Origin: Podarcis filfolensis
Lineage: Eukaryota
Assembly: GCA_964270895.1 (NCBI GenBank)
Contig: OZ185448.1
Length of the DNA stretch: 64,000 nucleotides
Direction: 5' to 3' (one strand)
In this document: positions 9,701 to 37,479 of the stretch, piece after piece
How positions within the stretch are numbered: position 1 is the stretch's first letter
How the letters are laid out: the number at the start of each line of letters is the position of its first letter
Notes under the pieces: model-generated
The model's input: only the letters and a program-made list of their open reading frames with translations
Database searches by the model: none
Told to the model about the DNA's origin: nothing
Position numbers and translations under genes: made by a program

Positions 9701-12700
9701 ACTGAGATGCCAACAGATTGTTAATAATAAACAGGTGCCTTGCTCAGCCCCTGCCCTAAGCACTTACCGTTTTTCCATGTGTACTCAGCGCTCCAGTCAC
9801 TCCAGATGCCCCTGAACAATATAATTCTCTGCCGCACTTTTGCAACATAGGTGGTTCCTGGCATGAGGTTATCGTCGAAGATTTTATAATGAAAGCTGTG
9901 CGTAGTGTGTTCGTGTAACTTTGGGAGGGGGAAAACAGAAGCAAACAGGTTTACATTATGTGGTCCTTCCCACGCCACAGGAAAACACTGGGAGGGGGTT
10001 CTTCTGGTGAGTGCAATTCTTCTCTTTCCCAACTTTCTATGGAGGAAGATCATTTTGGGATGTGGTAGAAAAGCTTTTGGACTCTTATGTGACAATGGAC
10101 AAGGGAATAAATTTCAGAGAAATGTTTCAAGACAAGCTGCAATGGAAGCTTTGTAGATGAAGTCAAGGGGCTTGAGACCAAATGACAGAAGGCTCCAGGG
10201 TGGAAGGATCTCCTTCCCTCCCTGCTGAGTCTGGCCATTTCCCACCTGAGGGGCGGCGTGGGGAGGGGAGGGCGTGGGGAGGGGGAGACAGCCACAGCCA
10301 CAGCCAGGGACCCAGGGCGGGCTCATTCCTCCATCTAGGCAAGCAAGCAAGAGATGCAATTCAGCCCAGCCAAAGCACTAGGAGTGTGTGGAACAGGACT
10401 GAGGTGGGGGAAGCCTGGCCTGGACAGAGCCCCAGGGGCCAGGTGAAAGAGGCCTGGAGGGCCGCATCTGCCTCCCTTCCCCTAGGTTCTGTGATCCAAA
10501 GCCTTGGGGGCTGGTGGCCCTGCTCTCAAGCCAGTCATAAAAGCCAGCCCACTGCTCTTGTGTGCCCCCCTGGTGAGGGGCATATAATAATTTGCAAATA
10601 TATCTAAAGGCTTTTGGGCCTGCAGTTCGCTGGATCTACAGAGCTGCCCAAGGAAAGTGTTAAGGAAGGGCAGGAAGATGCCATGTCAACTGGCATGAGG
10701 CAGAGTGGGGGGGGGGGCAGGGCCATTCTGAGGCTTTCAGGGGTCCCAACACCTCAACCTCTGCTCAGGACATAGAAGGTCCCCTCCATGGTGTATGTGA
10801 TTGTTTCAGTATTTTTAATTTTAGACTTAATGGCATTTTTAAACATGGATGAGCCTGCCACCTTGGGTTCCCTTTAGGATGAAGGTTTGGATATCAATGG
10901 AATTAATTAACAACAATAAATTTGCAGCACTATTCCAGGTGATCGTACAGGGAGGAGCATGCTGAGAAGGTGTGCCTACCTTGTCCGTCTGGTTTATAGG
11001 CCAATAGGCAACTTCATATTCTGTTTCCGGATTTTCGTGAAGAATGTTCCCTTCTTCATAGTCATCTGCCCAGGTGAAGATGTACGAGTCATCCTTCCTG
11101 TTAACAGTCAGGTTGACAAGCGGTCGGGGTTTTACTGCATTTGGGAAGAAATCAACAAAGAGAAAGATGTGGGGAGGCAAAAGAGGTTGGGGAGTGCGCC
11201 TGCTCCCCACACAGAGCAGCCAACGTGGGCCTCTGGTTTAGAAGGAGGGGAAGGTCAAAGCAGCAGGTCCTTCTCCCTGGAAGGACAGACACACACGTCC
11301 ACCCCCTTCTCTTAATTCCTTCTCGCTGCTGCTTCACACCATACCGTCTCATGGCAATGTTGTGTCCACATTAACAGGATGTTCTCCGTGTTAGAAACTC
11401 AGATATATAAGCTAGGTACCAAAAGGCTCCTTAAACCAGGGTTACAGTCACGAAAACAGAATGTCTAGTTGGCATTTTGGGGCCAAGCAGCTTGGTCCCC
11501 AAAATTTGTTCTGATCGTGCAGATAAAATATCACAGATACAGTTCTAAAGGGTGTGCTGTTAGTGTGTAAAACAGAGAAGATCCAAGGAAAAATGCACCT
11601 GGTGCCTGGGAAATTTCAAATGCTCAATGTGTTGTTCTTATGTTACTGTGTAGGAAAGCACCCTGTGGCTTTGATGTGGCTATAGAGAAACAGGCGGCCA
11701 GCAGGTGTGGGCAAGTAGCAGGCTGTGTCCATTCCAGGTGACCCCCAACATGCATACAGAGGCAAGCCCCTCAATCCATTGGGGTTTTCCACAGTTGCCA
11801 CATATTGTCCTGCTTCCTTGAATTCTGAGGCCTCTCCTAAGCTCTTCAACCAGTTCCCGGGAGTAGCCTTAGCTCTTCTAGGCAGCCATTTTTTTCTCTC
11901 TCCATCAACCTCTCTAACTTCTTCCAAACTGGAATATCCCCCCTCCAGGCACCTGAAGAATAAACCTGCCACCCTTCAAGGCAGTGGCTTTGCCTAACGG
12001 ACTAAGATGGATGCAGGAAGGTCTCTGAGCATTGATTGGTGCTAATCATGAAGACAAACCCTCCCTTCCCACCCCGCTCGTATGCTGCTCCTCTTGTCTT
12101 GTTCTTCAGAGCAGCCCCCAGGAATGCGCAAGGAGGGTCTGCCAGACCAAAGGATCCCTTACCAATGTCATCAGGGTCCACACTCGTCATCTTCCAGATC
12201 TCCTTCTCGTTGGCCTCCAGTGAGAAATGATACTTGTAGTTATGCAGTACTTCAGACTGAATGGTGCAAGTACACTTGGGGGTCACATCCAGTCCTCTCT
12301 CGTTCTTAGGAGAACATTCCCATGATTTCCTGCAACAATGGCAAGACTTAAAAGATGTTTTCAAAGTAGACAACACTTGGATTATTTCTGCCAGAGCCTC
12401 GATTTGGGAAAGCTCAGCCCAAGTGAGAGAGGGGCTTTGCAATGCCTCCAGCTGCACCAGGCTGTGGATTCCCCTGACCCCACCCCCGGAAAGGTTGCAA
12501 GCGTGCAAGAGGGGACAAATCTATGCACCTTGAAAGCTCTCCAGCAACAAATGATCCAGTGAAAAGTATAATGAGAAACCTTTTGGATCCAGCATTTCTT
12601 ATTCTCAGTTTGGAAAACTCAAAGTGACTTCAACTCAGCTCCCAGAGACATTTTGTAAAGAACCCGCATCCATTTTCGGGAAAAGGTTTGGGCTGGCTAC

Positions 12701-15700
12701 TCCTCCCAGGGTGTCTCAGAGAAGGCGAAGCCACCACAGATGCATTCTGCAGCCCTGATATCAGTAGCCACCAGGGCTGGCAGTCCAGGCCCTCAGACTA
12801 CATTCCCCAGGATGGCAAGGGCTTTATATTTACCTGCCATATGTTAAGGGCCTCCTTCTCTGTAAGAGAAGCACTGTGGCACAAGTAATGCTGAGCGAGG
12901 CCCAACAATGTTAATGTCACTTATTTTAATTTCTCTCACTTTTTATATTATTATTACCCTACCCTAGTAAGCTTTCAGGAGGGTACCACCAGCCCCGAAA
13001 ACACCCGACAGAGGAAAGAGATCTGGGGGCAGTTCACATGTTTCACAGCATGACCTACCCTGGGCCATTAACTGTACTAGTCGTTGCAACACGCAGGAGG
13101 AACTCCGTGGGGCAGTCGGTGGAAGCATCCACTTCCCAGTGACAAACCACTTCGGATTCATAGTCTGTGAGGCAACTTGGCTGGATGTCCTTTGAAGACA
13201 CGGCTAGGAAGAGACAGAAGAGTTTGCTTGAGTGCCAGACTGACACCAGCTGTTTGTGCAGTTTTCAGAGGAAGGCGTTTTCCTGAACGAAACTTACTTC
13301 TTCAGAGGAAGAGTCCAACAGAGGCCTACCCAGAAGGAGCCTCCGCAAAGCCCCACTCCAGCCCTCCAAGGTGCCATTGTGTGTTAGCCTGGAAAAGCCT
13401 TAGAAAAAAGACCTTCCNNNNNNNNNNNNNNNNNNNNNNNNNNNNNNNNNNNNNNNNNNNNNNNNNNNNNNNNNNNNNNNNNNNNNNNNNNNNNNNNNNN
13501 NNNNNNNNNNNNNNNNNNNNNNNNNNNNNNNNNNNNNNNNNNNNNNNNNNNNNNNNNNNNNNNNNNNNNNNNNNNNNNNNNNNNNNNNNNNNNNNNNNNN
13601 NNNNNNNNNNNNNNNNNGGTGGGAGGTCTTCCACAGGGCGGGTGCCACTACCGAGAAGGCCCTCTGCCTGGTTCCCTGTAACTTGGGCTTCTCGCAGTGA
13701 GGGAACTGCCGGAAGGCCCTCGGCGCTGGACCTCAGCTGACTGCTGCTTCTTTTTCCTCCTCCAAGTGCTTTGGGTTGCTCACCTCACCATTTATAATGC
13801 TCTCCTAAGAACATGAAAGTAGCCCTGCCGCTGGATCAGGCCAAAGGGGCCCATCTAGTCCAGCATCCTGCTGTCTCATTGAATGACCAGATGCCCCAGT
13901 GGGAAGCCTGCAGGTGGGATTCAAGCGCAAGAGACTCCCCACCTCCTGTGATTTCCTGCAACTGAGATTTGGAAGTGTTTCCGTGTCTGTTCTGAATCTT
14001 CCAACATTAAGCATCACTAGGTGTCCTTGACTTTTAGCATTATGAGAGAGAAAATAAAACTTCCCTATCTCATCTCCTTATCTGCTGCTGCTTACCTGTC
14101 TAAAATTTCTAGCAGGCTTGTTCTACTTTTCCGCCACCCAAGCCACTCCTCTGCTTCTCACAGTGGAATCCTGGGCATGTCTACACAGAAACAATTCCCA
14201 CTGAGTTCTGTAGCAACTTGAAGACTGAAAGGTCTATCATTCCAAAGCTTAGGGCCTTAGGCCAACAAGAAACTATTTCTTCTTCTTCCTGCAACAGACT
14301 AAGTGGCTCCCCCTGCTGGAACTTGCTGCGAAATGCTCAGGCAGGATTGCAGCTTGCGAGATGGCATCTTTGCCACGGTCTGCTTCCTTGCACCGCTTCT
14401 CCTGTTTCTGGCGTTCCTACAGCAACATGCCCCATTGACCTCTCTGCAACATGGCCCCATTGACCTCTCTGCTCCAGGCTGAGCCAGGACATCTCCAGCT
14501 CAGCTTGCGCAACCCTCCGGATGTTTATTTTCCTATCAAACATGCACAAGGCAGCTTCGCCTCTAGTTTCGGTTCCTCAAAAGCAGCAGAGGGAGCAAAC
14601 TTCCCTTTTCATCTTCAGCAGAAAAGCCATGAAGAAATGAAACAGACTAGATGCTCCCCAGGAGGTGAGGGGAGAGGTGGCATCCGTCCCCCAAGGGAGA
14701 GGGAGCCCCTTCCTGCCAACCCAGCCACATTCCTACACTGACTCAGGAAACTCTCTCTCGCTCCCCATCCCGTGAAATCTCAGGGCAGACCAAGTTGACT
14801 CTCTCAACATGGAAGCAGCCACAAGGAAGGACCACTCTGCCTCCTGTCCTCATAGTGGCCAACCAGGTGCCCCAAAAGGAAGATGCTCACAAACAGGAGC
14901 ATCCCCCCACTGCTGTTTCCAGTAAGTGGCATTATTCAGAGGCATTTACTGCCTCTGATACTGGAGGGAAAACCATCATCATGGCTAGTAGCTATTGGGA
15001 GACCTCTCCTCCACCTCTACTGTGGATTTGTCTCATCCTGTCTAAGTCGCCCAAGTGAGAAGCCATCACTGCCTCTTGTGGAAGTGAGTCCCATAATGTT
15101 TTAAATGTGTGGGGAAGACCTTATTTTTGTCTTCCAACATCCTTGGACGTCCCCAATGAGTTCGCCTGTTAATGAGGGAGGGGGAGAAAAACATCTGCCC
15201 AATATACCGTAAAAATTAAACTGTTGCGCTACTAAAGAGAAGTAGGAAGGATCTCCTGAGGTGGGAGACAGATGGAAAATCCACAGACTCAAGAAGAACA
15301 ATAGAATCACAGAATTGTAGGGTTGCTAGTGAGCCCACCTGCCTGCAGTGCAGGAATCACAGCTAACAACTGGGCTCCATGGCCTGGCTAGCAGACTGCT
15401 CCACCTCTACCTGCACCCCACTGGGAAAGCCTTCGCTCAGGGACAGAGCACCTGCTATGCATGCAGAAGGTCAAGGTTCAATCCCAAGTGGCAGCATTTC
15501 CAGGGAAGGCTGGAGAAACCTTGCCTGAAACCTTGGAAAGCAAGTGCTTATAGTCCGTGTAGATCATGGGTAGGCAAATTAAGGCCTTCTAAATCCGGCC
15601 CATGGACGGTCTGGGAATCAGCGTGTTTTTACATGAGTAGAATGTGCCCTTTTATTTAAAATGCATCTCTGGGTTATTTGTGGGCCATAGGAATTCGTTC

Positions 15701-16517
15701 TCCCCTCCTCAAAATATAGTCCGGCCCCCCACAAGGTCTGAGGGACAGTGGACCGGCCCCCTGCTGAAAAAGTTTGCTGACCTCTGGTGTAGAAAATATG
15801 GGCCGACCACCGAGCCCCCCCCCCCCGCCCCGGCTGGACACTTACTGATGATGGCAGGAGGAACCTAGCCTGTTTATGGAAACAGGAGGATAAATGGGGT
15901 GTGTGTGGTGGGTGCCTGGCTTATTGTAGAGATTCAAAACTCTGCAACGACCGTCTTAAGGGTATGGTGGTAAAACCCACGGCAACCCCAGACCCAGCAA
16001 AACTTCTTAAACACCTCCTCACCAACCCACAACACCAGGAATTAGAGCCAGAAATGCTCCTGGCACAGGAGCCAAATCCTAGGGGTCTCCCTTTCCCACC
16101 AGTTGATGGGCGTTGCCTTTCAAATGGTGTGGGTGCACAGCATCATGTGATCGATTATGGGGCGGGGCTTAACCCCCCCCCCCATTATATTGTATTCAAC
16201 TTGGCACGCCTGCTTCGTGGAAACCTGACCCAAGGAAGCAACCCGCCCAAGCCTTGAAAAGCTTCCAGGAGGCTGAACCTCGGCAGGAGGGTCCCCGCCG
16301 CCCCTCAGGGAGTCTCTGGGTGCGCAACTGCTACGGCCGGGGGAGCCTCGCTCTCCGCTCGGCTGGCCGCGCCCGGACTCTCCCTATTGCTGCCGAGGGA
16401 AGCGGCTTTCCTCCGCGGAGACTTACTGTGCCAAAGCGAGCAGGCGAGGAAGACGGAGAGGAGGAGGAGGCCGGGCTTCCTCCGGGGACCCCCGAAACCC
16501 GTCCCGCCGTCGGCCAT
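6743..16517 (-). CDS. IL4R: Interleukin-4 receptor alpha, full-length membrane form (7 coding exons, 653 aa)
   Basis: Exons: 16517-16427 signal peptide (MADGGTGFGGPRRKPGLLLLSVFLACSLWH); 13203-13059 (CLTDYESEVVCHW); 12329-12163 (ECSPKN..KCTC); 11134-10980 (VKPRPLVNLTV); 9918-9768 (WSDWS); 8374-8275 TM exon of 100 bp (ILWIFIPLLCVFIMALATFSFFC); 7895-6743 (Box1 KKGWWDQIPNPAKS, then GYKCF, GYRAF, PYKPL). All junctions are GT-AG and phase-compatible, total 1962 nt. Head-to-head with NSMCE1 as in other amniotes. Confidence 0.92.
13418..13617. other. Assembly gap (200 N)
   Basis: Run of n inside IL4R coding intron 1. Confidence 1.
13618..13738 (-). mobile_element. L2 fragment adjoining the assembly gap
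   Basis: Homologous to the two other L2 copies; absent from the matching site in unit B (about 23422-23450). Confidence 0.7.
15565..15786 (-). mobile_element. hAT (Charlie-like) MITE inserted into a SINE
   Basis: Homologous to 48151-48476; 7/8 TSD GTGTAGAT/GTGTAGAA. Confidence 0.8.
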
Positions 16518-17280
16518 CCGGAGAGTCGGGAACGAAGGGCGCCGGGCCCTGCCGGGAAGAGGCAACAACGTCGAGCGGCCCGCTTCCCTCCTCCTGCCAG
16601 TGCCAGCCCGGCCGCCAGGCGCGGAGCCAGGCGAAGCGGAGCTCAGGAGACGCCCGCCCGCCCCCGCTTGGCTTGACCTGGCTGCCCGTAGTGCCGGAGC
16701 CCCTCCCGCTGCTGCCTGCTTGGGTGACGGGCTGCTCCACTCGGTGGGTGGGGAGGAAGGGCGGGCCTCCCTCCGCGCGTCCCGGGGCGGCTCTCTGAGC
16801 AAATTCGGCCAGCGCCCGCCTCGTCCCGCCTCCCCCGGGGTTCCGGCCAGCGCTCGTGCGCAAAGCGAAAGGGAATCCCGGAGGGGAGAGGGCCCGGGGA
16901 GGGGGGGGGCGGAGACCCGACGGCGACCGGGAGCCCTTCGCGACTCGCCGACTCCAGCCCCCTTGGGCCACGCGCCCTCCGCTGCTACGGCTGCTGTCCG
17001 GGAAGCGCTGGGTTACGCCCCGGCCCTCCTCCTGGGGCGCGGATTTGCATGCCGAACCCGGCCCCTTCCCGCCTTTGACGGGAATTCCCAGCCAGCTAGG
17101 AAGCCCTCCCTGGCGGGGCTCGCACAAAACTCGGCTACAACAGACTGCGATCGGTGTCTCCTGAGCATGTGCAGAGTGCTCGCGGCGCGGGACGACCACG
17201 CCAGCCCCGTGGTGTGTGCGCGCAGCCAAGTCAGTCCGGGCTCTGGAGTCGTGGCGCTGCAACCCTTTTGGCCTGTTTCA
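16250..17280 (-). promoter_or_regulatory. CpG island, putative IL4R promoter
   Basis: CpG-dense tract over and upstream of the IL4R ATG; perfect kappaB palindrome GGGAATTCCC at 17080-17089, octamer ATTTGCAT at 17043-17050, GAS-like TTCGTGGAA at 16214-16222. Confidence 0.65.
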
Positions 17281-19270: not shown

Positions 19271-20242
19271 GCCTGTGTTAGTGTACTCTTTAATATAGTT
19301 CAGTCCAGGTATGAGGCGGGAGCCTTGCAAAGCTTGTGCTGCCTGCCAAGTCAGTTCCTGGAAGGGGTAGAGGCATAGGGGGCCCAATGAGTTATTCCTT
19401 CCAAATCAACTTTAAGGGTGCCAAGCACAACTCCCTTGGACCTCTGTGTGTGAAATTTGGCAGGCTTCATCCCCTGAAAAGGGGATGCTAAGCTCACAGA
19501 TTCCACCCATTTCTGCCTGAAAGGAGAAAAGGGTTAATAATTTGGTGCTCCCCTAGTATTGTTTTCTGTTATCAGCAGCCCAATTTACAATAGCCCTATA
19601 TTGGAAACAATCTATAGAACTCCCCACTGAGATCTGGTTAAATAGTATTTGGAGTGTGGCTCTGTTGGAAGGCCTTACTTGACACAAAAGTGTAATTAAA
19701 GGCACTTCAAGGATACACACTTTTGGTGATGTTGGCTTCCTTTCTTTTCCTTTATAAATGAGACGGAAGATACTTTTATTCCACTTTCAACACAGGAATC
19801 TCTGTGGAGAGGCTACTTGAATTGATAATACATAACTTATTGCATGTGCACTATGTACTACGTATGGAATTTAATAAGAATGGACCACTGGACAAGTTAA
19901 TGTAGTTGTGTGTTCTTGTCTTTATTTAAATGAGAAACAATAAAAATCATTGGGGTGACTTCAGAAAGAGGTATTGTCTACAGCAGAGAATTGCACTGAA
20001 TTAAGTGAGAGGTCTGCATATTAATTTGATGTCTAGCTGACTGGAAATGCAAGACCCCAGCAATGTGAGAGAAATGCTGTCACTCACTTAAAGGGGCCGG
20101 ATGATGCACAAACGTTCCTGTGGGTGGGGTCGGAATATTTCACAAATCCAGAAGGTTTACAAAATCTAGAAATAAAGAGCCCACAATGTGGAGCCCAGAA
20201 CACACGGGGATGCCAACACATTGCTAATAATAAACAGGTGCC

Positions 20243-23200
20243 CTACCCGATCCACCCATCTGTTTTCCAACTTATCGGGATGCTCCAATCACTCCAGGTG
20301 TTCCCGAGGAAATAATTTTTCTGGCGCACTTTAGCAAAATGGATCCTTGCTGGCATGAGACTCCCTATGGCAATTTTAAGTTGCGTGTCCGTCGTCATGC
20401 GTTTGCGTGCCTTTGGAGGGGGGAAAAAACCAAGAAGCAAACAGGTTTACATTATGTGGTCCTTCCCACACCACAGGAAAACACTGGGAGGGGGTTCTTC
20501 TGGTGAGTGGAATTCTTCTCTTTCTCAACTTTCTATGGAAGGAGATAATTTTGGGATATGGTAGAAAATTGCTTTTGGACTCTTATGTAGCAATGGACAA
20601 GGGAATGAAAGCTTTGTAGATGAAGTCAAAGGGCTTGAGACCAAATGATAGAAGGCTCCAGGGCAGAAGAATCTCCTTCCTCCTGAGCCTGGCCATTTCT
20701 CACCTGAGGGGTGGGGGGACAGCCACAGCCAGGGACCCAGGGCTGGGCTCATTCCTCCACCCAGACAAGGAAGAAAAGATGCAATTCAGCCTAGCCAAAG
20801 AACTAGGAGTGTGTGGAACAGTAATGGGGTGGTGAAAGAGGCCTGGAAGGCTGCATCTGCCACCCCTCCCCTAGGTTCTGTGATCCAAAGGAAAGCAATG
20901 GCTTGGGGCTGGTGGCCCTGATCTCAAGCCAGTCTACTCTGAGAAGTCATAAAAGCCAACCCACTGTTCTTGTGTGTGCCCCACCTGTGAGGGGCATAAA
21001 ATCATCTGCCAAATATATTGTTATAGATTTAGGATAAACCCTAGAAATTAATAAATGCTACTCCTGTAGTGATGGCTGAAAACCACATATACTCCCCTTT
21101 TCTCAAATGCAGCTCTGCACACTGGTCTGCATAGGCAACTAGGGCAATTTGCCTGTCTATTGCCACAAAGAGCAGCTGAACATATGTATTGTTGTGTGCA
21201 TGTGGTGGGGGGGGCAATGACTTTCACTAGAACAAATGGATTCTGTGAATGGTCCTTGATAGACATCAGAGAGAACAATGAAGGCACTTTCTCATGCAGA
21301 GCTGCCCAAAGAAAGTGTCATGGAAAGGCAGGGAAGATGCCATGTCAACCAGCATGAGGCAGAGCAGGGGGGTGGGGAGAGGGGTATTCTGAAACATCAA
21401 CCTCTGCTCAGGACACAGAAGGTCTCCCCCCCACAGTGTATGTGGTTGTTTTAGTATTTTTAATTTTTGTTTTAATGGCATTGTTTTAACATGGATGAGC
21501 TTACCACCCTGGGTTCCTTTGGGAGGAAGGGTGGGATATAAATGTAATTAACTGATTAACAATAATAAATTTGCAGCACTATTCCAGGTGATTGTACAGA
21601 GAGGAGCATGCTGGGAAGGTGTGCCTACCTTGTCCTCCAGCATGCCTTCTTGCCCAAAGGCAACTTCATAGTCTGTTTCCGAATTTTTATGGAGAATGCT
21701 CTCTTCATTATAGCCATCTTCCCAGGTGAGGATGTATCCGCCATCCCCCATCTTAAGTTTCAGGTTGACAGGCTGTCGGGGTTTCACTGCATTCAGGAAG
21801 AAGACAACAAAGAGAAGGATGTGGGGAGGCAAAAGGGGCCCCTGCTCGCCTCTCAGGGAAGACAACACGGGCCTCTGCTTTGTAAGGAAGGGCTGGTCAA
21901 AGCGGCAGACTTTTCACCCTGGAGGACAGACCTCAACCTCTCCAAGTTCTCTCCAGAACTGGAGTATCCCCCTCCAGGCACCTGAAGAAGGGGGCTCTCC
22001 ATTGCAAAGGTTTCTGCCACAATAAGCCTGCCACTGTTTAAGGTGGTGACTTTGCATAACGTACTAAGGCGGATGCAGGAGCAGCTAAGGAAGGTCTCTC
22101 AGCATTGATTGGTGGTAATCGTGAAGACAAATGATCTGTGCCCACCACACTTGTATTCTGCTACTCTTGTCTTGTTCTTCAGATCAGCCTCTAAAGATGC
22201 GCAAGAAGGATCTTGCAGACCAAAGGATCCCTTACCAATTTTACGAAGGTCCTTAATTGCCTTCTTCCAGATCTCTTTCCCATTGGCCTCCAGCGAGAAA
22301 CGATACTTGAAATTATCTAGTACTTCAGACCGAATGGTGCAAGTACACTTGGGGGTCACATCTAGGCCTCTCTTGTTCTTAGGAGAACACTCCGACGATT
22401 TCCTGGAACAATGGCAAGACTTAAAAGATGTTTTCAAAGTAGACAACACTCGGATTATTTCTGCCACAGCCTCGATTTGGGAAAGCTCAGCCCAAGTGAG
22501 AGAGGGGCTTTGCAATGCCTCCAGCTGCACCAGGCTGTGGATTCCCCAGGGAAAGTTGCAAGCGTGCAAGACGACATAAATCTGTGCACCTTGGAAGTTC
22601 TCCAACCCAAGTGGTCCAGTGAAAAGTAGAATGAGAAACCCTTTGGATCCTGCGTTTCTTATTCTGAGTTTGGAAAACTCACAGTGGTAAGGAGGGTACC
22701 ACCAGCCCCAAAAACACCCAACAGAGGAAAGAGAAGATCGGGTGGCAGTTCTCACATTTCATAGCATGACCTACTTTTGGCCACTGAATCGATTAGTCAT
22801 TGTAACATGCAGGAGGAACTTCTTGGGGCAGTTGGTAGAGGCGTCCACTTCCCAGGAACAACCCACTTCGGAGTCATAGTCTGTGAAGCACCTTGGCTGG
22901 ATGTCCTTTGAGGATACGGCTAGAAAGAAACAGAAGAGTTTGCTTGAGTGCCAGACTGACACCAGCTGTTGTGCGTCATCTCCAGATTTTCAGAGGAAAG
23001 CAGTGTAGGAATGTTTTACTCAATGCAACTTACATATTCAGAGGAGGCCTAGCCAGAAAGGGCCTCTGCAAAGCCACACTTTGGCCCTCCAAGACTCCAC
23101 TGCAGAAAGGGATAGAATCTCTGCTCTACTCCTGTTTTTTCAGGCAGAGCCGTAATTACAGGGGGGCTAGCCAGGTTTTTTTGCCCTGAGTGAAGCCTCC

Positions 23201-24638
23201 AGATGGGTGCCATTGAGGCTCTTAAGCTCTGTGTGTGTGTGCCAAGCTGTGTCTTTGACAAGGGTGAAATAAAGCCTAGATCTGAGTCTGGCCGAGGGGG
23301 ACCTTGTGTGTGTGTGTGTGTGTGTGTGTGTATAGTTTTTAAAAAATACTCCTGGGGTAGAGAATGCATTTTGTCTGAGTCTGGAAAGCTAACTCTGCCT
23401 CTGCCTTAGAAAAAAGACCTTCCAAGGACAAGCCTTAAATTTCTATGTTGACTGCTGCTTGTTTTTCCTCCTCCGGGTACATTGGGTTGCTCCCCTCAAT
23501 GTTTATAAAGCTCTCCTAAGAACATGAAACTAGCTCTGCCACTTGATCAGGCCAAAGGGGCTCATCTAGTCTAGCATCCTGTTCTCTCAGATGCCCCAGT
23601 GGGAAGCTTGCAAGCAGTATTCAGACACAAGAGACTCTCTACCTCCTGTGGTTTCCTGCAAATGGGATTTGGAAGGGTTTCCATGTTTTGATTAGAGGCA
23701 GAGTATGGTCATCATGGTGGTAGCCACCGACAGTGCTGCCCTCTTTGAAATTGGATTAAAGCAATCAAATTTGTTGGCCATCATTGCCTCCTGTGGGAGC
23801 AAGTTCCACATTTTAACTCTGTGCTGGATGAAGTTCTTCCTTTTATCTGTTCTAAATCTTCCAACATTAAGCATCACTAGATGTCCTTGACTTTTAGCAT
23901 TATGAGAGAAAGAAGGAAACTTTTCTCTATCCAGTTTCACTCCCCCTGCTTTGCGAAATGCGCAGGCAGGACGCAGCTTATCTGAGCTAGTGGTGCCCCT
24001 CGGTTCATTTCCTTGACTGCTTCCTTGAGCCACTTCCTATGCAACACAGCTGTGCTCCAGATTGTGCCACGACATCTCCAGCTCAGCTTACTCAGCCCTC
24101 CGGAAATGAAACAGCCACAGGACTAGCAACCCCCCCCCCCCCCGGAGGTAAGGGGCAGTGTCTGTCTCCCAAAGGTGAGAGGCCCTTCCCAACTGCCCAG
24201 CCGCTCTCCTGTACTGACTCTGGGATGTCGATCTCTCTCTCCTGCATCCCCTGAAATCTCAGGGTGGACCAAGTGGACTCCTTCAAGATGGAACTGAACA
24301 AAGCTCTGGTAACAAGGAACCATTTTAGGGGGCTTTCCATTTGGAGTTGTCGCACGTTGAAATGTTAGGCCTCCTGGAAACCTGACCCAAGCAGCCTCAG
24401 CCCATTTCAACCCGTTCAAGCTTTGGAAATCTTCCAGGCAGCTGAAACCTGGCAGGAAGGTCTCCGCCGCCCCTCCTGGCCTCGCTCTCTGCCCAGCTGG
24501 CTGCCCAGCTGCCCTCCTGCAGAGGGAAGCAGCTTTCCTCCACGGAGACTTACTGTGCCAAAGCGAGCAGGCGAGGAAGACGGAGAGGAGGAGGCAAGGC
24601 CTCTGGGGCCCCCCAAGGCCCGTCCTGCCGTTGGCCAT
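20243..24638 (-). CDS. Secreted IL-4R-alpha-like paralog, ectodomain only (5 coding exons, 240 aa)
   Basis: Exons 24638-24554 (signal peptide), 22919-22775, 22402-22236, 21786-21629, 20410-20243, total 723 nt, open frame with GT-AG junctions. Six D1 Cys and WSDWS are retained. The donor after WSDWS is lost and the frame reads ...SWKTDGWIG-TAG. AATAAA on the minus strand at 19921-19926 and 19775-19780. Expression is not shown by the sequence. Confidence 0.75.
23515..23910 (-). mobile_element. CR1 LINE 3' fragment (shorter copy at about 13806-14050)
   Basis: GHLVMLNVGRFRTDKRKNFIQHRVKMWNLLPQE resembles the CR1 ORF2 C-terminus; present in both duplication units. Confidence 0.75.
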
Positions 24639-25601
24639 CCGGAGAGCTGGTGATGGAATGTGCCTGGGAAGAGACAACAACGTTAATGCCTTTTGAAAGC
24701 CTGTTGGCCGCCTCCAGATGCGTGCCTGTGGAGGTAGACTGCCACAGGCAATGGGGGCTCTGCAGGTTTAGCTGAACCCTAGAGCGATCTTCACTACGGA
24801 ACGCCACCCACTTACCTGTGTGAAGGGATTAGGGAGCCCCCCTTTTATTCAAGGCCCAACTGAGAGCAAGGCCCAGCCCCTTTGCAACAGTCATAGCCAG
24901 CATGCAACAGGCAGAAGCCACGAGATATTGGCCAGTTGCCCAGCTGTGGCCAACCACTTGTCCTGCCCTTCAGGCCTTCGGCTTCTATGAGGAGCTGGGA
25001 GGAGACTGGGCCAAGGGGGCTCAGATGCTAGGGCCCCCAAACACTCACCGCTACTGACCCCCTTTCTATGTGGCTTTCCGGGTCTCTTTGCTTTGCTGTA
25101 CTTGCCGCTAATGCTGCCTGGTCGCTTCTACAGGGAGGCTCAGCCCAGGGATTTTGCTGCCTGGGGCACAGCAGCAGCAACTCAGTGTATAGCACCTCTG
25201 AATGTGGACAGAGCTGGTTTTAAACTTAGGAACCTTTTATTTCAGATTAGTAGGCAGAGCAGCTCCCAATAGAATATAACAGCCATGGAGCGGGTTTCTA
25301 GAGCTTATTGAGAGATGGAGGAGTGAGAGATGGTGTTTTTCTGATCAAATCCCCCTCATGCACAAGTCACCCTCTTTCTCTCCCAGCCAACTCAGGCGAG
25401 AAAGCCAATGGTCCTCTGCTAAGTTGCTACTACAATTTAGAGACCCCCCTTTGTTTTGACTGCATTTTTCTCAAACAAGCTATTCAATGCTTCAGGAGCC
25501 TGGATAGCAAAAGTTGAACCACATTGCAGTGCTCTCTCTCACACACATTCACTCACCAATACGAGTGGATGGAACCTCCATTTTCTCAGCCACAATGTCA
25601 C

Positions 25602-26130: not shown

Positions 26131-26429
26131 TACGTGTATTATGCCTGGGCAGTATTTGCATCAGCTGGGTGGTTTTTTTAATACGTGAGGGATAATAAGC
26201 CTGAGCTCTGACTTTGCAGTGACTTTTCCTTTAAGGGTGGAACTGCGACCATTGAGAGTTATACTGAAATTCTGAGTGTCTGAGCCCACCCCACGCCCTT
26301 ATGGGGTGGGCAGCACTATCTCCCCCCCTCCCCCCAAAAAACACCTAAATGAACCAGGACGCTCCTTCTACAAACAATGAGCGTGCCCCTCTCTACTTTG
26401 TTATCTTCAGGCCCTGCACTTCTCCCTGC

Positions 26430-26561
26430 TCCAAACGTCAATCCGGCTGTGACTTCGCTCATTGGCTAAGAGCTCCGAGAGGGCGTGGCCATTATTGTCG
26501 GAAGCTCTTTTCTCCCGCGGTTTCTTTTCTCTCCTGTTCTTCAGCTCTAGTTCTCCGCTAG
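26430..26561 (+). promoter_or_regulatory. NSMCE1 promoter and non-coding exon 1
   Basis: CpG-rich; inverted CCAAT (ATTGG 26461), GC box GGGCGTGGC, donor TAG|GTGAGC at 26561; acceptor of the first coding exon at 27355. Confidence 0.6.
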
Positions 26562-27362
26562 GTGAGCAGCAGCCGAGGGGCAGGCGCGCTCGCCTACCCG
26601 CTTCCCTCTTCATTTCTTCCCGAGTGGTTGCACTCTGCCCACGCTCAGAGGCTACTTTCCGGGTCATCCCCAGCCAAGGTAGGCAGCGTCTCACGCGCAG
26701 GATTCACGTGTGTTCGCGCTCGTCGGGAAGGCAAAGTGGCTTGCGGAGGGCGGGTGCTGGGAAAGGCGGCGCTCCCTCCCTCCCTGACAGGGGCCGACAC
26801 ACCGGAAACTGGGCAGCTGCAGCAGCAGCAACCCCAGGTGTGGTGGAGCAGAATGCCAAGACAATCTTACTCGGCTACGAGTGATCGCCAAAAACATGAA
26901 GAAGTTGCAAGGCTGGAAGCGGCTCCCCCCCTCCGACATTTGCAGAGGAGCCCCCTCTAAGCCCCCTCTAAGCAAAGGAGACCCAAAGTACATTTAAAAA
27001 TATATATATATTTAAAAGCAACCCCATAAAAGTGAACGTAGCAATTGTTTTGTGTCAAGGAAGCCGTAATTTCAAAGGGAAGGGGTGTGATGGGGTTTGT
27101 GTTTGTGATTTATTTATGGCATATTTTGTATTTTTATCTTGCATTTTTATGCTGTGAACCGCCCTGGGATCTACAGAGTATGGGCAGTATACAAATTTAA
27201 GATTTTTTTTTTAAAAAAAGCCATTCTGCACAGTGAGCTTGTTGGGGAGCCTGCTGGATGAGACCGAAAGGATCCCCAGGAGGAGGGAGAGGCAGAGGGG
27301 GACAGGAATGCTGTTCACGGCCCTGTTATCTAGCTGTTTTTCTCCATCCTGCAGTCCTGAAC

Positions 27363-30300
27363 ATGGACATGGCCCTGGGCACCAACCTGAATGATGCTCA
27401 CCGCCAGTTCCTGCAGGCCTTCCTAACTCTTGGCTTTGTGGAGAGGCCTGAAGCTGCGAAGCTACACCAGTTGTACTGCCAGCTGCACAAGGGTGAGTGG
27501 GGGAGCAAGTCCACTGGCGGAGATTAATAGAGGGCTGGGTAGCAGGCTAGTCCTCAGGAGGGGAAAAGGAGGCAGGAAGGGCTGTGTGGGTATAAGTAAA
27601 AGCTGTGCTAAGTAATCTTGAGACTCAGCCCCTCTCCCCACATTTGATCCTTTTCTGCTCTTTGACAAGCTGAGCAGGGAAGGCGATGGTGGCATTATGG
27701 CGTTCCCCTCCACCATCATGCTCTCCTGTGTGCTCTTAAGCTGTCCCATCTTTCCATTCCATCTTCTGCTGAGTTCAGTGCAAAAAGTCAGCTGTGTATG
27801 TGATGCTCAGGTGTAAAGCACAGGGTGTGTGTGTATGTAATTTGTCAGCGAAAGGATCCACAACCTTTCTTCCTTTCCAGGGCTCCAGGGACTTCTTTCA
27901 CCTGGATCAGTGCCAGCGTCAGAACTGAGGCAGGAGAGGGAGACTGAAGGGGACCCTCCCCTCCCCTCCCTCCCTCCCTCCCTCCCTCCCTCCCTCCCTC
28001 CCTCCCTCTGTGTGTGTAATGAAGAGCCTCTCAGGGTCTGGCAGTGCCCCCTTTCCACCCTCGCCTCTGTCCCCAAGAGTTAGCAGTCACGGATATTCGG
28101 GTGTGGGGGCTTTTTGTTTCTTTAAAAGCAAGCAGAACTGTAGACCAGCTGGACTCTAGAGATAGTTTTAGCTGAGATTTTTTTTAAAAAGTGATTTTGA
28201 ATTACAATTTTTTGGGGGGGGAGGGAAACGACTCATAAATATGCACACAGGTCCTGTTTCACAACACTTGCTATGCAAAAATTCACTTATCCAAACATGA
28301 GGAGTTAGTACCCAAACCTCACTATACACACCTCAGATTCATATATCCAAACAGCCAAAGTTTGCCCGCTTCCTTGCTTCCTTCTCTGTTTGTGCTTTGC
28401 TGGTCAGCGACAGCCATTTTCAGCCAGAAACCAGGGAGGGTGGGGGAGAGGGATCAGAAAAACCAGTTTTTTCTTTGCTGGTTGGCTGCAGCCATTTCAG
28501 GAAGAAAACATGGATGGGGGTAGGGAGAGAGATTGGATAAATCATGGATTGGAAATGTTCCTGTAGGAATCAATGGAAATTGTGAACTTGTTATGTGACT
28601 GTTCTCCTTTTCCTTATATTCTCACCTCTCTTTTTCTTCCCTCCTGCACAGTCCATTATGTACCTGATCAGCTGGATGACTTCATCAACACTTTGAATGG
28701 TCAGCTGCAGCCTTTGTCTTTGGAGATCAGGAAAGGAGTATCAGAAGAAAATGGGAGAACATATTATGCTTTGGTAAGGCAGGGTTGGCTGTCACCTGGT
28801 GTCTTTTCCTTGTAATTTGAAATTGGGAAGGGTGGGATCTGGGGAGGGTCGCATGCTGCTGCTGGATCACAGTGTCCCCCTGACAAGGAATCCAAGAGGC
28901 ACACCCTTTCCCTCATTCTACACCCTTGCTGGATGGTGGCAGGACTGCTCCAGAGGCTGGAGGCTCTGCCACAGGAACTGAGATGAGCCAATAGCTGCAG
29001 GAATAAAAAAGGAGCTTGCCTCCTTCGAAGCAGCTTTGCCCATGGGAGGGACCAGCCACATCTGGGCTGTAGGTGCCAGGGAGACGGCGTCAAAGAATCC
29101 TCTTGGCTTGGACCTCAGAGGCTGCCTGGTGTCTCCTTTATCACACTTGCTTTCTCCCCCAGGTGAATCTGGCTGAAACTGAGATCACCCTAATGGCAAG
29201 CGACTACTCTGAAAATGAGCTGGAATTGTTCAAGAAGACTGTAAGCATGGAAACTTTGAGTGCGCAAACGTGGCTGAATCTGTAGCAGATTGCTGCCTGC
29301 CTACCTGTTGGCCAGCCTCCTAAGTGGCCCAGATTCAGTGGCCCCCAGTAGCCATGGGGGGACTCACTTTCTGGACTTGGCCTCTGCTCCCCAGCCTGTC
29401 CATGTTTTGGGAATCTCACGGGTCTTGGGAGGGTGAAATGCAGCCCTCTGCATCCAATGTGCTTAATGCAGTGTTTTTTTCTGGGGGTACACAATACTGG
29501 CACCTTCCCCCATGTTATAAGTGCGGTACTTACTGTCACAACTTCATGGTGAGTACCGGCACCTTTTTGCCTAAAAAAAAGAAGAAGCATTGGCTTAATG
29601 AAATACAAAGCCAGGAGTCCACTATCCTCCCGCTAGCTGGCCAGAGGGACGTGGCCCCTGTGATGTCCTTTGCTCACTTAGGAAAGGGGTTTTCCATCTG
29701 CAGATGGATCTGATTGTGCTGTCTAGCAACGGCTTTGCCTCCTCCACGGAGATCCTGAACCTAGCTGACCAGCTGAAGCCAAAGAAGATGAAGAAGGTGG
29801 AGGCTGAGCTAGTACTGCAGCGCCTGGTGCAGGATAAGTGGCTCTCCGAGGTACGGGAATGTGGGTGGGGAGCTGGAGTGGGCAGGTCCCACTTTTGCCC
29901 CCTTGCCTTCCTTTGATATGGGGGCAGTTGAACCACAAGGGACGTATCTGGGCCTCTGCTCTCTTGCAGAAAGAGGGAGAATACACTTTGCACCTGCGCT
30001 GCGTCCTGGAGCTGGAGCAGTACATCCTCCGCCACTACCAGGACTCTGCCCGCAAGTGCCACGTCTGCCACAGCCTCTCCATCCAGGTCAGGAGGCCCAC
30101 ATCAGCTGGTGGTGTATGTGGGATCGTCAAGGCTTGGGGATGGGGGAGCAGTGGCCAGGAGTTCCCCTGTGCAGTGCCACCTCCCCTGCAGCTTAAAACC
30201 AGCCTTGTGGAGAGGCTGATCAGGAGAAAGTGTTAACCACCCTTGGCCTCCAGGAGCCTTACTGCTGCTCAGCCCTGAGGCTCTTCATCTCACAAAGGCC

Positions 30301-31083
30301 GTCTGCCTCCCATTCACAGGAGTTTTTCCCTTTCAGAGCCAAGTCTGTGAGGACTGTGGAATCGCTATGCACTTGCCTTGCCTTGCCAAATATTTCCAAG
30401 CCCAAAGGGAACCTCGTTGCCCTAACTGCAAGCAGTTCTGGCCCCACCAGATTCCAGGTAACACCCCTGAAGAGTGCCTTCCCAGAGAAACATGACCAGT
30501 TTCGTGCCGCGGGTTGGGGCGGGGATACAGGAGCCTGCTCTCCTTCTGGTCCACTGTCTGCCTTTCAGGACATTCTGGGAATTAACCCAAGGACTTCTTT
30601 GCTTTAGTGAACTGGCAGATTTCCTGGAAGCGATACGGCTTCTTGCATATGAGATAAAGAGAGACTCATTTGTGTAGAATGTATTCTTCCAGATTTCTAG
30701 CAGACCCCCTCTCAAAGTTCACGGAAAGCCCATCCTCCCGGAAGCAGCTAGCTAGCCAGATTTCATCTCATTTGATGGATTCTGTTTCTTGCCCTGTGGC
30801 TCAGGCTGGGAGGGAAAAGGATCTCTGGTGGGTCGGGCTTTCTTTTGGCCAACAGGGAAAGATCTGCCTGTCAGAAACTGGTACATAAATGGGTTGAGGG
30901 TGAAAGTGGAGGTGGGAAAGGTCCCAAAGGCCACGGTAAGGTAATCAAACTCTTATTCAGCCCATTCTGTATTTTTCCATCTCCATCACAGAGATCAACC
31001 TACCAGGACCTTCTGGGCTCTCAAGCACTCCACAGGAGACCCGGAGGAGTGCAGCCTCCCCAATGGCCCAGAGGCGGCAGTAA
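27363..31083 (+). CDS. NSMCE1: NSE1 homolog, SMC5-SMC6 complex component (7 coding exons, 268 aa)
   Basis: Exons 27363-27492, 28652-28773, 29163-29240, 29704-29850, 29970-30086, 30337-30457, 30992-31083 (807 nt). Motifs [36 protein letters not shown] and the RING-like [23 protein letters not shown] match NSE1. Confidence 0.97.
27954..28006. repeat. (CCCT)n microsatellite; others: (TG)n 23305-23331, (GATT)n 42457-42480, (CCCT)n about 62987-63010
   Basis: Read directly from the sequence. Confidence 0.95.
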
Positions 31084-31272
31084 GAGTTCTCCCGGCCCTT
31101 GTTGGAGAAGTACAGACAAGCAGCTGTTACTGGGGCCCAGCACAGCCGCTCTAGATTTGCGTAATTTAAGTGTCTGAAATACATACCTTGTAATATATTT
31201 TTTTCCCTCAGGATCCAACCTGTCTCACAATTCTCTTTCCTTTTTTTACTATTTATGTAAAGCTTTTTTTAA

Positions 31273-31300
31273 AATAAAAAATACAGGTTTTTCATTTATT
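31273..31300. terminator. Convergent poly(A) signals of NSMCE1 (+, 31273-31278) and KDM8 (-, 31295-31300)
   Basis: AATAAA and TTTATT 16 bp apart; each is the first canonical hexamer I found after the respective stop codon. Confidence 0.6.
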
Positions 31301-32646
31301 TTCAAGCTATCAAAGCACATGTAACAACATACAATACCTTTCCTGGCAACTGCATGACCGTATATTTAGCAAAGTTTTTAAAGGTCTTATGAGGGTGACT
31401 GGGCCTCAACTCTGCTCCTTCCCAAAGCTGTCCTCTGTATCTTTTTGTTTTTGAAAGATAACGTAACCCTTTCGGAACACCATAACTTGTGAGCATCTCA
31501 AGAAGCTGAATGTTGCAGGATTCAGGACAGACTGCTTCATGCAACACATAGTTAAAACTCTCTCCTGCAGGAGCCAGTGAGGGCCAGCAACCTAGAAGGC
31601 TCTAAAACAAGAGGGTCACCAATGGCTACTAGCCAGGACGGCTAGGCTCTCTCCCTCCACAGTTCGTGGCAGCAGTGCTTCTAAAAATCAGTAGCTGGCA
31701 GGCACAGGAGGGGAGATTTGCTCTTGTCCTTGGGTCCTGCTTGTGGGTTTCCCATTCAGATGTCTGGTCAGCCACTGTGAGAACAGGATGCTGCGCTAGA
31801 TGGGACACTGGCCTGATCCAGAAGGCTCTTCATGTTCTTATGAATAAAGGAAGCTGCCTCAAGCCACGCCAGAGCAACGCTTGTGACAGGAAGCAGAGTC
31901 ACCAGCAGGGGTTGTTCCTAGCCTTACTTTCAGAGTGCAGAGTTTGAACTCTGGACTGTCTGTGTGGAAAACGGGCACTTTTGCCTTCCCCAACCCCAAA
32001 TTTAAAGAAATCTCAATTCCTGCTTGTAACTTCTATAGCTTTACCCTCCTTGCATTTGTGGGGTTGGTGAGGGCATGATGAATCTACAGAGAGATTTCCC
32101 TCCGCAATGACTAAGGACTTCTTTGCCCATCTTGCACAAGATCTGAGCCCTTCAGACTTCGTAAAGCAGTATTATAGAATCAGAATTGTAGAGTTGGAAG
32201 GGATCCCAAGAGTCGTCTAGTCCAACCTGCCATGCAAGAAACCTTTTGCCCAACATGTATTGCAGGGGCTCTAGTCATGAGTGCATCAGTTCCATTAGGG
32301 CCTCCACCAAGAAAACAGAATCAAAATGGTGACTTTTCTGTCTCCCTTGACCAAGCAGGTTGTGCTAGACCAGCAAAGGCAATTCAATTCACAACACATA
32401 ATTTAAATATTAATTTGTATTCTGTTGTCCTTTGAGAAAAGTTTTAAGAGAGCCCTTTTTAACAAAAACCAAAGAGGGACAAGTCACTATTTTAGCCCCT
32501 CCAGAAAACTCTGTCTTTGATGCCCTTGATCCTCAACCACAGCAGTTGAACTGTGTGTCACAGCCCTTGCTGCCTCCTGGCAGCTCCTTCCTTCATCTTG
32601 CCTGAAGTCCCTGAGCAGAAGAGCCCTCCCTTGCTCCCAGCAGACG

Positions 32647-35600
32647 CTACGACCACCAGAAGCTGACGGAGAAACTTATGTCCAGGGACCGCACATAGTG
32701 CCAGTAGCTAACTGGGATGAACAGAACTTCTCCAGGGCTCAAGATGCAATCTTGAAATGCAGCTGCTTTGAAGTTGGGGAATTTCACCAAGTCAGGGTCT
32801 TCCACATCCACCTGGAAATGAAAGAGAAAACGCTGTCTTAATATAATTCAGACAGGACTATCCACGGTAGTCTCATTCTTTGCACCAAGAGGCTTACAAT
32901 TTAGGTGACAGGAGAGAGGGGCTGGATGTGGAGGGAAGCAGGGAAGGGGAAGAAGAGGAAGAGGTGAGTGTTGGAGCCTGGCTGCAGTTGGGGATGGCAA
33001 CTAGGATACGGGGCCAGTCTTCAGGGCGAACTCCATGATTTCCTTCATGGAATAATTCAGCCCCTATTATGAGGGACTGACTACTGGGTGCCCACCTGGC
33101 TGGTGTTGTGAAGGAGGTGGCCTTCATGTGGATAAAGGTTTTCAGATTCCTGAGGAGAATACAGGCGGACATATTTCCGTCCCATTACCTGGAGAAAGGA
33201 ACGTCGAAACATTTGTCAATAATCCGAGCTCAACTTTTCTAACTAGCATTCCTTTGCTCAGTATCCGGAGTGTGCCCTGACACACAGGATTTCTGCAAAT
33301 GGGGTCTGATCAACCTCTTGCCATCATTTGCAGAAAAAGGAGCCCAGACATCCCCGTCCAAAGTTTGCAGGCCAACAATAGGCACTCTCCCCTGCCCCAG
33401 TGCCTTTCTAATTTCAGTTCTCAGCACTCCCTCTCTGCTCTTCTCCTTGACAGCCCATCAGCACCTCAGTCCAGCTGAGATCTCTGGCTGCAGAGAGCCT
33501 TCCCTGAGCAACTTCTAGAGGGACGCTTCTCTGGTGACTGTTGTTGCTGCCACCCATAGAACAGGAAGCAGCTTCCCTTGAAAGGCAGGAGGATACAGAA
33601 GTCCTGCCTCTGATTGGCAACTGCCCTCCTTACCCCCCGCACTGCAGCCTGTCACAGAGGCCCTACCTGGACTAAGAAGTTCTGCTGCGGATCCTGATGC
33701 AGAGGGGAGACAGTCCCTGGTGGACCAAACCAGGCGTTGACAGTGATGTCCTCTTCATCTCCTTCGCCCAGGCAGCAATAGTCAGGGATGCCAATATCCA
33801 GCTTCAGCTCTGGGATCTGGCAGCAAATTGGTTAGAAAGGAAAGCATTGTACACTAGCTTGACATTTATTTAAAGTATTTATTTAGGGACGCGGGTGGCA
33901 CTGTGGGTTAAACCACAGAGTCTAGGACTTGATGATCAGAAGGTCGCGGTTCGAATCCCCATGACGGGGTGAGCTCCCGTTGCTTGGTCCCTGCTCCTGC
34001 CAACCTAGAAGTTCGAAAGCATGTCAAAGTGCAAGTAGATAAATAGGTACCGCTCCGGCGGGAAGGTAAATGGCATTTCCGTGCACTGCTCTGGTTCGCC
34101 AGAAGCGGCTTAGGCATGCTGGCCACATGACCTGGAAGCTGTACGCCGGCTCCCTCGGCCAATAAAGCAAGATGAGCGCCGCAACCCCAGAGTCGGTCAT
34201 GACTGGACCTAATGGTCAGGGGTCTCTTTACCTTTTTAACCTGCTGTCTATTTTGTTTGTGATCTTCGGATGAAGAGTGGCAAATAAATAATCCAAAGAT
34301 GGCTCACGGCAACCATTAAAACGAGACCACAAGATAAGAGATGGTGAGGCAAAGGATGCAAACAGAAAAAGGCGGAGTTTCAGGCATCAACCACTTGGGC
34401 AAAGCAAATGCCAACAGAAAAGGGAAGAGGCTTTGTAAAGTGCCAGGAGGCAGCTATCAAGGAAGGGGCAAGATGGGTCAGAGCACAGAAAAGGCCTGAT
34501 CCTGCACCTCAGCCAAGGCTCTCTTTACTAGTGTGGGTGGCGAAGGGACAGCATTCAAACCAAACAAGGTCTCCCTCTGTTCCAGCATTAGTTGTTATGG
34601 GGATTCTCTGCTGGGGCCAGGCTGGGGGGGGGGCTGTTCTATACAGTCTTGGGTTCCCTCCTCCCCTGCTTCCTCAGGACATCAGGAGAACAGCTGGCAA
34701 CAGGATGTTGGCTGGCATTAAACAACATGAGTTTGATTAGCTAGAAGTGACTCAGTGGGTTTTGGCAGACGGCCCACCTAGAGTCAGGGAGGAGTTTTCC
34801 TACCAGGTGGATTGGACACCTACGAGAGGAGAGGTCTACTGTGATGCTCGCAGCCCTTTGCACACGTCTCTGAAACCTGTTTGGCCCACGTGCCTTTTCC
34901 CATGGACTGTGGAGGATGCCTGGGGTGGAGTTTCCAGAGAAATGCTTCCCTGAAAGGCGTGGTGGCACTTTGGATCATTTCCAGATATGAAATTTTGGGG
35001 GTGGAGAATTCACTGCATTCTGGTGAACCCGGCATCTGTTTCCTCCCATCAAATAAGAACTAGAAGAACCATCCCTTTGGTTTACCTGGTCAAAGAGCTG
35101 GTGCTGAGCAAGGTATCCCTTATGGTCCTGCAAATTGAAGGGAGGGAAGAGAGAGAGAGAGGAGTGAGTGGATATCCTTTATATACAGAAAAGTCAACTG
35201 AACAGCAGCAAACAATTTGGTGGGGAGTCCAGAGCCCCACCCCACAAACTCTACCACTCACTGGTCAGCTCCCTGCTCCCCACCCCAAGGAGCTCTGCCA
35301 GGCCTGCCCTCCCTTTCCCAGTCTCATTGCAGCCATCCATGTTACTCAGAGGCTGGCAGGTGCTCACATAAATAAGTTCACTAATATTTTATTTAAGGAG
35401 AAGCCTTTCCTGCTTGCTGAGTTCCCAGGGCGGAATACAACAATGGAGTTAACACAGACTCAACCCAGCATAATTTGTCCTGCTCTTCCCAGCCAGGCTG
35501 TTTTGTGGGAGGGAGAAGATCCAGACCTCATTCTCAATATACTGTCTGATGAAGTCATCCACGGTCATGAGGGTCTGGGACCACTCCTCATCTGTGTAGC

Positions 35601-37472: not shown

Positions 37473-37479
37473 GGCCGGG

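Follow-up and report, generated by a model that had tools for sequence, protein, structure and literature searches.

Whether a partial copy of a cytokine receptor gene can become a gene in its own right, and for what kind of protein, is the question raised by a locus of the lizard Podarcis filfolensis. The locus lies in a stretch of 64,000 nt of contig OZ185448.1 (assembly GCA_964270895.1), hereafter called the window. Its minus strand carries, at 24638–20243, a partial tandem copy of IL4R, the gene of the interleukin-4 (IL-4) receptor alpha chain, and further downstream the complete parent gene. The partial copy is termed copy B and the parent copy A. A preliminary description of the sequence had proposed that copy B is dedicated to a secreted paralog of the receptor. 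We consider it probable, if far from certain, that copy B is a selected, real protein-coding gene common to lacertids, whose product is most likely a secreted binding protein of the IL-4/IL-13 pathway.

Copy B starts with an ATG at 24638 and stops with a TAG at 20245–20243. Its coding sequence of 723 nt is distributed over five exons and encodes 240 aa, and all four introns are bounded by GT..AG. Exon 1 (24638–24554) contains the ATG and the signal peptide, visible as a hydrophobic signal-type segment at the N terminus, and ends in a phase-1 donor, CACA/GTAAGT (the slash marks the splice junction), that is kept in all orthologs. Exons 2 (22919–22775) and 3 (22402–22236) encode the first and second half of domain 1 (D1) with three cysteines each. 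Both exceed the curated cut-off of the Pfam family IL4Ra_N (PF09238; 22.1 bits), with 36 bits for exon 2 and 22.4 bits for exon 3, and the ortholog of P. lilfordi scores 61.8 bits. Exon 3 is 87% identical to the P. muralis protein XP_028561840. Exon 4 (21786–21629), placed by the spliced reading frame, encodes the first half of domain 2 (D2). Exon 5 (20410–20243), placed by the spliced frame and the orthologs, encodes the second half of D2 with the WSDWS motif (20296–20282), followed by the five read-through codons DGWIG and the TAG. The limits given in the preliminary description were exact, and the five exons with intact splice sites, the open frame, the signal peptide, the six D1 cysteines and WSDWS that it had named are all confirmed. 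Intron 1 (22920–24553) measures 1634 nt as opposed to 2848–3706 nt in P. lilfordi, P. raffonei and Lacerta agilis, which is a deletion of 1.2–2 kb specific to the window's species or assembly.

What separates copy B from its parent is the end of exon 5. Where the parent reads AAC G/GTAAGT, the copy reads ACA GAT GGG TGG ATC GGG TAG, and the splice donor is lost (20254–20263). Hence, the frame continues for five codons of former intron sequence before it reaches the stop, as had been described. This donor is destroyed in every B-type copy, including those of Zootoca, and all of them share the same TAG in the same context; the stop and its flank, GGGTAG followed by ggcacctgtt, are identical in copy B of Podarcis, Lacerta and Zootoca. 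A tblastn search of the window with full-length Podarcis IL4R found no second transmembrane (TM) exon, its sole match at 8375–8262 lying inside the parent gene. The absence of a TM exon between the copy and the IL4R promoter thus holds, the only one in the window being that of IL4R itself. The TM segment, box 1 and cytoplasmic tail that characterize signaling IL-4R alpha are all missing from copy B, whose open reading frame (ORF) ends five codons past the D2 exon. Lacking an anchor in the membrane, box 1 and the tail to which STAT6 docks, the product cannot signal and should be secreted. At the sequence level, copy B shows the marks of genes of the IL-22BP type, as it possesses start, stop and poly(A) signals of its own and a membrane form cannot be made from it. 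No structured RNA was matched by Rfam between 17000 and 27000.

The same stretch of exon 5 bears on a reading in which the copy B exons are alternative 5′ exons of IL4R that read-through splicing would join to a membrane receptor with a variant ectodomain. Both copies lie on the same strand, copy B being only 3.7 kb upstream of the IL4R ATG, and the donors of copy B exons 1–4 are intact. Yet the exon-5 donor that such splicing would need is the one destroyed in every copy, a conserved stop and poly(A) region follow directly downstream, the CpG island of the IL4R promoter stands between the two units, and the Podarcis database models end at the stop of copy B. We regard read-through into IL4R as very remote.

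The encoded protein carries the features of a class I cytokine receptor, namely six cysteines in D1 of the mature protein in every B ortholog and a WSXWS motif in D2. Among 40 IL-4R sequences, the cysteines C39, C49, C59 and C98 never vary, and C82 and C96 hardly do. For searches and folding, the orthologs of P. muralis (P0001) and P. lilfordi (P0006), which are 89–90% identical, stood in for the window protein. With the P. lilfordi ortholog, which has 89.6% identity to the protein of the window, a sequence search hit human IL-4R alpha chains at an E value of about 5e-18. The AlphaFold2 model of this ortholog has a pLDDT (predicted local distance difference test) of 88.3 and consists of two β-sandwich domains. 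The best Foldseek matches of this model are the human IL-4R alpha structures 6oel_B, 8k4q, 3bpn_B and 1iar_B, with template modeling scores by target of 0.83–0.86, and the two fibronectin-III–like domains of the model can be superposed on solved IL-4R alpha. The product of copy B comprises a signal peptide and, complete with both domains, the cytokine-binding module of IL-4R alpha.

Copy B is not confined to the window. When the stop-free frame that surrounds exon 3 was used for a word search, two proteins were retrieved, one of P. muralis (239 aa), named interleukin-4 receptor subunit alpha-like, and one of Zootoca (207 aa); the cluster of the former also contains a 240-aa entry from P. lilfordi and a 210-aa entry from P. 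raffonei. Annotated models comprise RefSeq XP_028561840, XP_028561841 and XP_028561843 (P. muralis) and XP_053220264 (P. raffonei) as well as ENA CAI5792487 (P. lilfordi). These Podarcis models lie between NSMCE1 and IL4R, have five exons, end in ...WSDWSIPISWKT[D/A]GWIG and are 85–90% identical to the window protein; they differ from the present account in being automatic annotations without a described function. At the DNA level, the window is 97–99% identical to P. raffonei, 94–96.5% to P. lilfordi and 85–91% to L. agilis. Intact orthologs of 231–240 aa with the same stop are found in P. muralis, P. lilfordi, P. raffonei (as a five-exon model), L. agilis and Zootoca vivipara (B1), giving, with the window included, six intact frames in three genera. 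The L. agilis copy (L003:812–6820) lies upstream of its IL4R and has an intact 237-aa frame without a gene call. Zootoca B1 has an intact five-exon frame of 231 aa, likewise without a called gene at the locus. Zootoca contains at least three B-type copies (L004:883–6515, L004:13484–18825 and L005:10001–16387) and two full-length IL4R genes (782 and 791 aa, from L004:22492 and L005:17922) within about 100 kb. Two further Zootoca genes, LOC132593203 and LOC132593204, look like additional copies.

In a maximum-likelihood tree of the genomic region from exon 2 to exon 4, the B copies form one clade and the A copies another, each with 100/100 support. This split means that a single duplication took place before the three genera separated, and it excludes that A and B have evolved in concert or undergone recent gene conversion. 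Outside Lacertidae, an exhaustive representative search returned only full-length IL4R at no more than 37% identity, partial models and IL-21R-like proteins of fish. The latter include annotated proteins of 245–324 aa from the cyprinids Megalobrama and Cyprinus (P0136, P0144), called interleukin-21 receptor-like, that match the whole lizard soluble protein; they may represent another short, separately encoded class I receptor.

Whether these frames are open by selection or by chance can be decided from their substitutions. On the five-taxon B tree, 187 substitutions are counted by parsimony. About 4% of random changes in the copy B frame create a stop, meaning that about 8 nonsense changes are expected; not one occurs (P about 3e-4; Monte Carlo 5e-4). 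The 19 bases of the ATG and the splice sites (16 splice bases) are likewise free of substitutions (P about 5e-3). The coding indels among the B orthologs, roughly 10, are all net multiples of three, as opposed to only 9–30% of the short indels in the introns of these genes. Under neutrality, the chance of avoiding all nonsense, ATG and splice-site changes and of acquiring indels in frame only is, taken jointly, far below 1e-6.

Constraint extends beyond the stop codon. The homology to the parent ends near 19959, so that 19958–20242 is a likely 3′ untranslated region (UTR) derived from the former intron 5. It is followed by a conserved block of 195 nt (19763–19957) outside the duplicated segment, the likely cleavage and polyadenylation region. 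Poly(A) signals lie at 19926–19921 (AATAAA), 19875–19870 (ATTAAA) and 19780–19775 (AATAAA), meaning +317, +368 and +463 from the stop, in agreement with the two AATAAA that had been placed at about 320 and 470 nt. The block diverges from L. agilis by 2.3% versus 7.8% in introns and from Zootoca by 2.6% versus 10.1%; it is thus 3–4 times better conserved than the introns. A repeat was ruled out as its origin, as the block is unique in the window. From the nonsense and splice statistics, the in-frame indels and this 3′ block, neutrality is rejected: the open frame, the correct splicing and the 3′-end signal of copy B are under selection. The idea that a lizard lineage possesses soluble IL-4R as its own gene is borne out insofar as three lacertid genera have kept the ORF, its stop and the poly(A) region and neutral decay is rejected.

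While the frame is preserved, its codons change fast. The coding sequence of copy B evolves 1.8–2.4 times faster than its own introns in six of six ortholog pairs (Fisher p 1e-3 to 6e-8). The acceleration ends at the exon borders, with 13.0% divergence in exons compared with 5.3% in the 40-nt flanks (window versus L. agilis, p = 4e-5). Since the acceleration does not reach into these flanks, it cannot be put down to a regional mutation effect. CpG sites make up about 10% of the copy B exons versus 2–3% of the introns and account for part of the excess. They are ruled out as its full cause, since the non-CpG rate is still 1.7–2 times the intron rate, the range for nonsynonymous changes being 1.7–2.2. 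We read this pattern as probable positive selection on the protein, with a caveat on synonymous sites that is given below. The parent ectodomain exons, measured in the same manner, evolve at the intron rate (ratio 0.95–1.04), and the parent binding module thus appears to be weakly constrained or also adapting. Between lacertids, the ratio of nonsynonymous to synonymous rates (dN/dS) of the parent ectodomain is 0.56–0.80.

Two groups of observations weigh against copy B being a working gene for a binder of the parent's ligand. The first concerns the gene. Pairwise dN/dS among the B orthologs is about 1 (0.45–1.19), which taken alone looks neutral. Synonymous sites of copy B are nominally faster than introns as well (1.4–2.9 times; few sites, weakly significant), so that part of the exon excess may not be due to selection on the protein. 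An exact look-up of the P. muralis protein and a word search with exon 4 gave no transcript contig, a result that is uninformative because the lacertid IL4R cluster has no transcriptome member either. The RefSeq model of P. raffonei (L002:10001–16473) has 210 aa only, because it ignores the exon-4 donor and continues into the intron, although this species has kept that donor, the acceptor of exon 5 and an open five-exon frame of 239 aa. Finally, two of the Zootoca B-type copies lack exon 4. Their modeled products contain D1 only and end by read-through (207 aa) or by a frameshifting splice from exon 3 to exon 5 (157 and 223 aa), from which we take the B family to be partly decaying. Frame-breaking variants in other species, named in the preliminary description as an argument against a gene, are absent from the six orthologous frames.

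From the same observations, one might conclude that copy B is an unprocessed pseudogene or otherwise non-functional duplicate, with a frame that is open by chance and database models that are annotation artifacts. Besides the dN/dS value, the missing transcript and the visibly truncated Zootoca copies, such a reading can draw on the lack of a CpG-island promoter (the ratio of observed to expected CpG is 0.28 for copy B versus 0.82 for the parent) and on L. agilis B and Zootoca B1 being unannotated. It does not explain six intact ORFs with one common stop in three genera, nor exons that evolve faster than the neutral rate instead of at it, nor a poly(A) block under constraint. The pseudogene is rejected on the nonsense, splice-site and indel statistics, and we hold it to be highly improbable. 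Copy B is probably transcribed, RefSeq models being available, three of them for P. muralis, and its product would be secreted and bind a ligand.

The second group concerns the ligand. The mature ectodomain of copy B has an isoelectric point (pI) of 8.8–9.2 and a net charge of +5 to +9 and is thus basic in every species, whereas the parent ectodomain is acidic (pI 4.9–5.9, net −5 to −14). All N-glycosylation sequons are lost in Podarcis B, and two are kept in L. agilis B. The human residues Tyr13 and Tyr183 are presumably hot spots for IL-4. The residue aligned to Tyr13 is kept in copy B; the position aligned to Tyr183 is Tyr in copy A and in copy B of Lacerta and Zootoca, whereas every Podarcis B has His there. 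Positions that vary among the B proteins show a modest enrichment in loops that correspond by alignment to the human IL-4 contact loops (28/48 versus 63/157, p = 0.03). Charge reversal and the Podarcis His both argue against copy B binding the parent's ligand in the same way. The reversal leaves room for a changed ligand and makes a plain IL-4 trap less certain.

The charge reversal is also the point on which a second functional reading turns, in which copy B is a neofunctionalized secreted paralog that no longer acts on the ligand of the parent receptor. Candidate partners would be another cytokine, a product of a parasite or virus, the acidic ectodomain of IL-4R alpha itself or the extracellular matrix, and the protein could also be a soluble subunit like IL-12p40, EBI3 or CLF1. 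Next to the change of sign in every species, this reading is favored by exons that evolve at about twice the intron rate with a sharp boundary at the splice sites, by the enrichment of variable positions in the contact loops, by the His of Podarcis and by the amplification to at least three B-type copies in Zootoca, some of them D1 only. Against it stand the retention of the full binding module and of the Tyr13-aligned residue, the Tyr that Lacerta and Zootoca keep at the Tyr183 position, and the fact that none of the data here indicates an alternative partner. We consider neofunctionalization possible but doubtful. A related proposal, to which we give similarly tentative credence, is that of a lacertid-specific birth-and-death family of secreted IL-4R alpha derivatives under recurrent positive selection, which would bind a partner other than IL-4 after a charge swing of 10–23 units. 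It is compatible with a single B copy each in Podarcis and Lacerta and a minimum of three in Zootoca. The partner could be a parasite or virus factor targeting the IL-4/IL-13 axis, or the proteins could act as soluble cytokine subunits.

To return to the favored reading, a selected gene for a secreted IL-4/IL-13 binder, its origin can be outlined from the alignment of the two copies. Positions 19959–24646 align with 9442–16525 at 71–84% nucleotide identity, introns included, which bears out the tandem partial duplicate of the preliminary description. Within the window, copies B and A differ by 23% in exons and by 12% in alignable intron. Local alignment places the 5′ limit of homology about 45–54 nt upstream of the ATG, and the 3′ limit near 19959 is the duplication breakpoint. 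The duplicated segment (about 19959–24683) therefore begins some 50 nt ahead of the ATG, ends about 285 nt inside intron 5 and was placed upstream of the parent. The region upstream of the parent is a CpG island (GC 74%), in contrast to the 600 nt upstream of copy B, to which the CpG ratios given above refer; since homology begins only so shortly before the ATG, the CpG-island promoter of the parent was not copied. A putative intron of the 5′ UTR (24664–24815, minus strand) with a conserved donor, ACAG/GTAAGT (GT at 24815–24814), and an acceptor, CCCAG/GCAC, 25 nt before the ATG suggests that copy B has a short 5′-UTR intron and a new promoter, possibly connected with that side of the intergenic region which faces NSMCE1.

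The proposed course of events is as follows. A segment of IL4R was duplicated upstream of its parent, and the copy lost the exon-5 donor, so that its frame closes after five codons of former intron. Most likely, the conserved AATAAA region, recruited from unique sequence just past the breakpoint, marks the end of the transcript. The product would be secreted and bind a ligand of the IL-4/IL-13 family in solution, as an antagonist or a carrier, and would thereby compete with membrane IL-4R alpha or buffer access to it. A protein rate of about twice the neutral rate together with the switch from an acidic to a basic protein points to a binding surface that is still adapting, perhaps with a changed partner.

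The remaining features of the window are its neighbors. Parent IL4R extends from 16517 to 6743 on the minus strand, as placed by exon matches, its ORF and tblastn. Its ectodomain coding exons lie at 16517–16427, 13203–13059, 12329–12163, 11134–10980 and 9918–9768, with WSDWS at 9804–9790. The TM exon follows at about 8375–8274, and the last exon, at about 7894–6743, contains box 1 (WWDQIPNP; ORF 6743–7987). In the loci of the Podarcis relatives, the gene order is KDM8, NSMCE1 on the opposite strand, copy B and IL4R. In the window, gene calls of relatives and DNA alignment place NSMCE1 on the plus strand at about 27300–31200, head to head with copy B, and KDM8 on the minus strand at about 37500 to 32700, with a CpG island at 36000–38000. 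Synteny around 26400–38000 is the same as in mammals.

The statement that no description of such a gene was known stands in part. Literature searches found no description of a lizard soluble IL-4R alpha gene, while RefSeq and ENA gene models of 239–240 aa are already public. Hence, the sequence is not new; its recognition as a conserved, selected and dedicated soluble IL-4R alpha gene appears to be. A dedicated, selectively kept lizard gene would show another way of regulating type-2 immunity, and its route of birth would be on record: a partial tandem duplication, the loss of one splice donor and the capture of a nearby poly(A) signal. With a protein that evolves faster than neutral, a charge reversal and the amplification in Zootoca, the locus would also be a tractable case for receptor–ligand or host–parasite co-evolution in reptiles.

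Among known systems, mammalian soluble IL-4R alpha resembles copy B in its product. It arises by splicing or shedding and competes with membrane IL-4R alpha or buffers access to it, and its mouse form is an alternative splice product of Il4ra. Mouse soluble IL-4R alpha and copy B both consist of an ectodomain that ends soon after WSXWS with few foreign residues and without a TM segment. The lizard form differs in possessing its own locus, start, stop and poly(A) region, and in being only 60% identical to the ectodomain of the membrane receptor, with opposite charge. IL-13R alpha 2, the decoy receptor of the IL-4/IL-13 pathway, resembles copy B as a separately encoded, non-signaling binder in the same system, but it is a paralog of IL-13R alpha 1 and not of IL-4R alpha, and it keeps its TM segment. 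To our knowledge, there is no antagonist with a gene of its own for IL-4R alpha. Further separately encoded cytokine-binding proteins are IL-18BP, OPG and CLF1. The class of separately encoded soluble cytokine antagonists to which IL-22BP (IL22RA2) belongs is rare, IL-22BP being "one of only four" in humans according to a recent review (PMC11727785). In principle, copy B works like IL-22BP: it is receptor-like, has a soluble form only and is encoded separately from the signaling receptor. Compared with both IL-22BP and mouse soluble IL-4R, it is fast-evolving, carries the opposite charge and has so far been found only in three genera of Lacertidae. IL-22BP is a paralog of class II receptors, whereas copy B derives from a class I receptor and stands in tandem with its parent.

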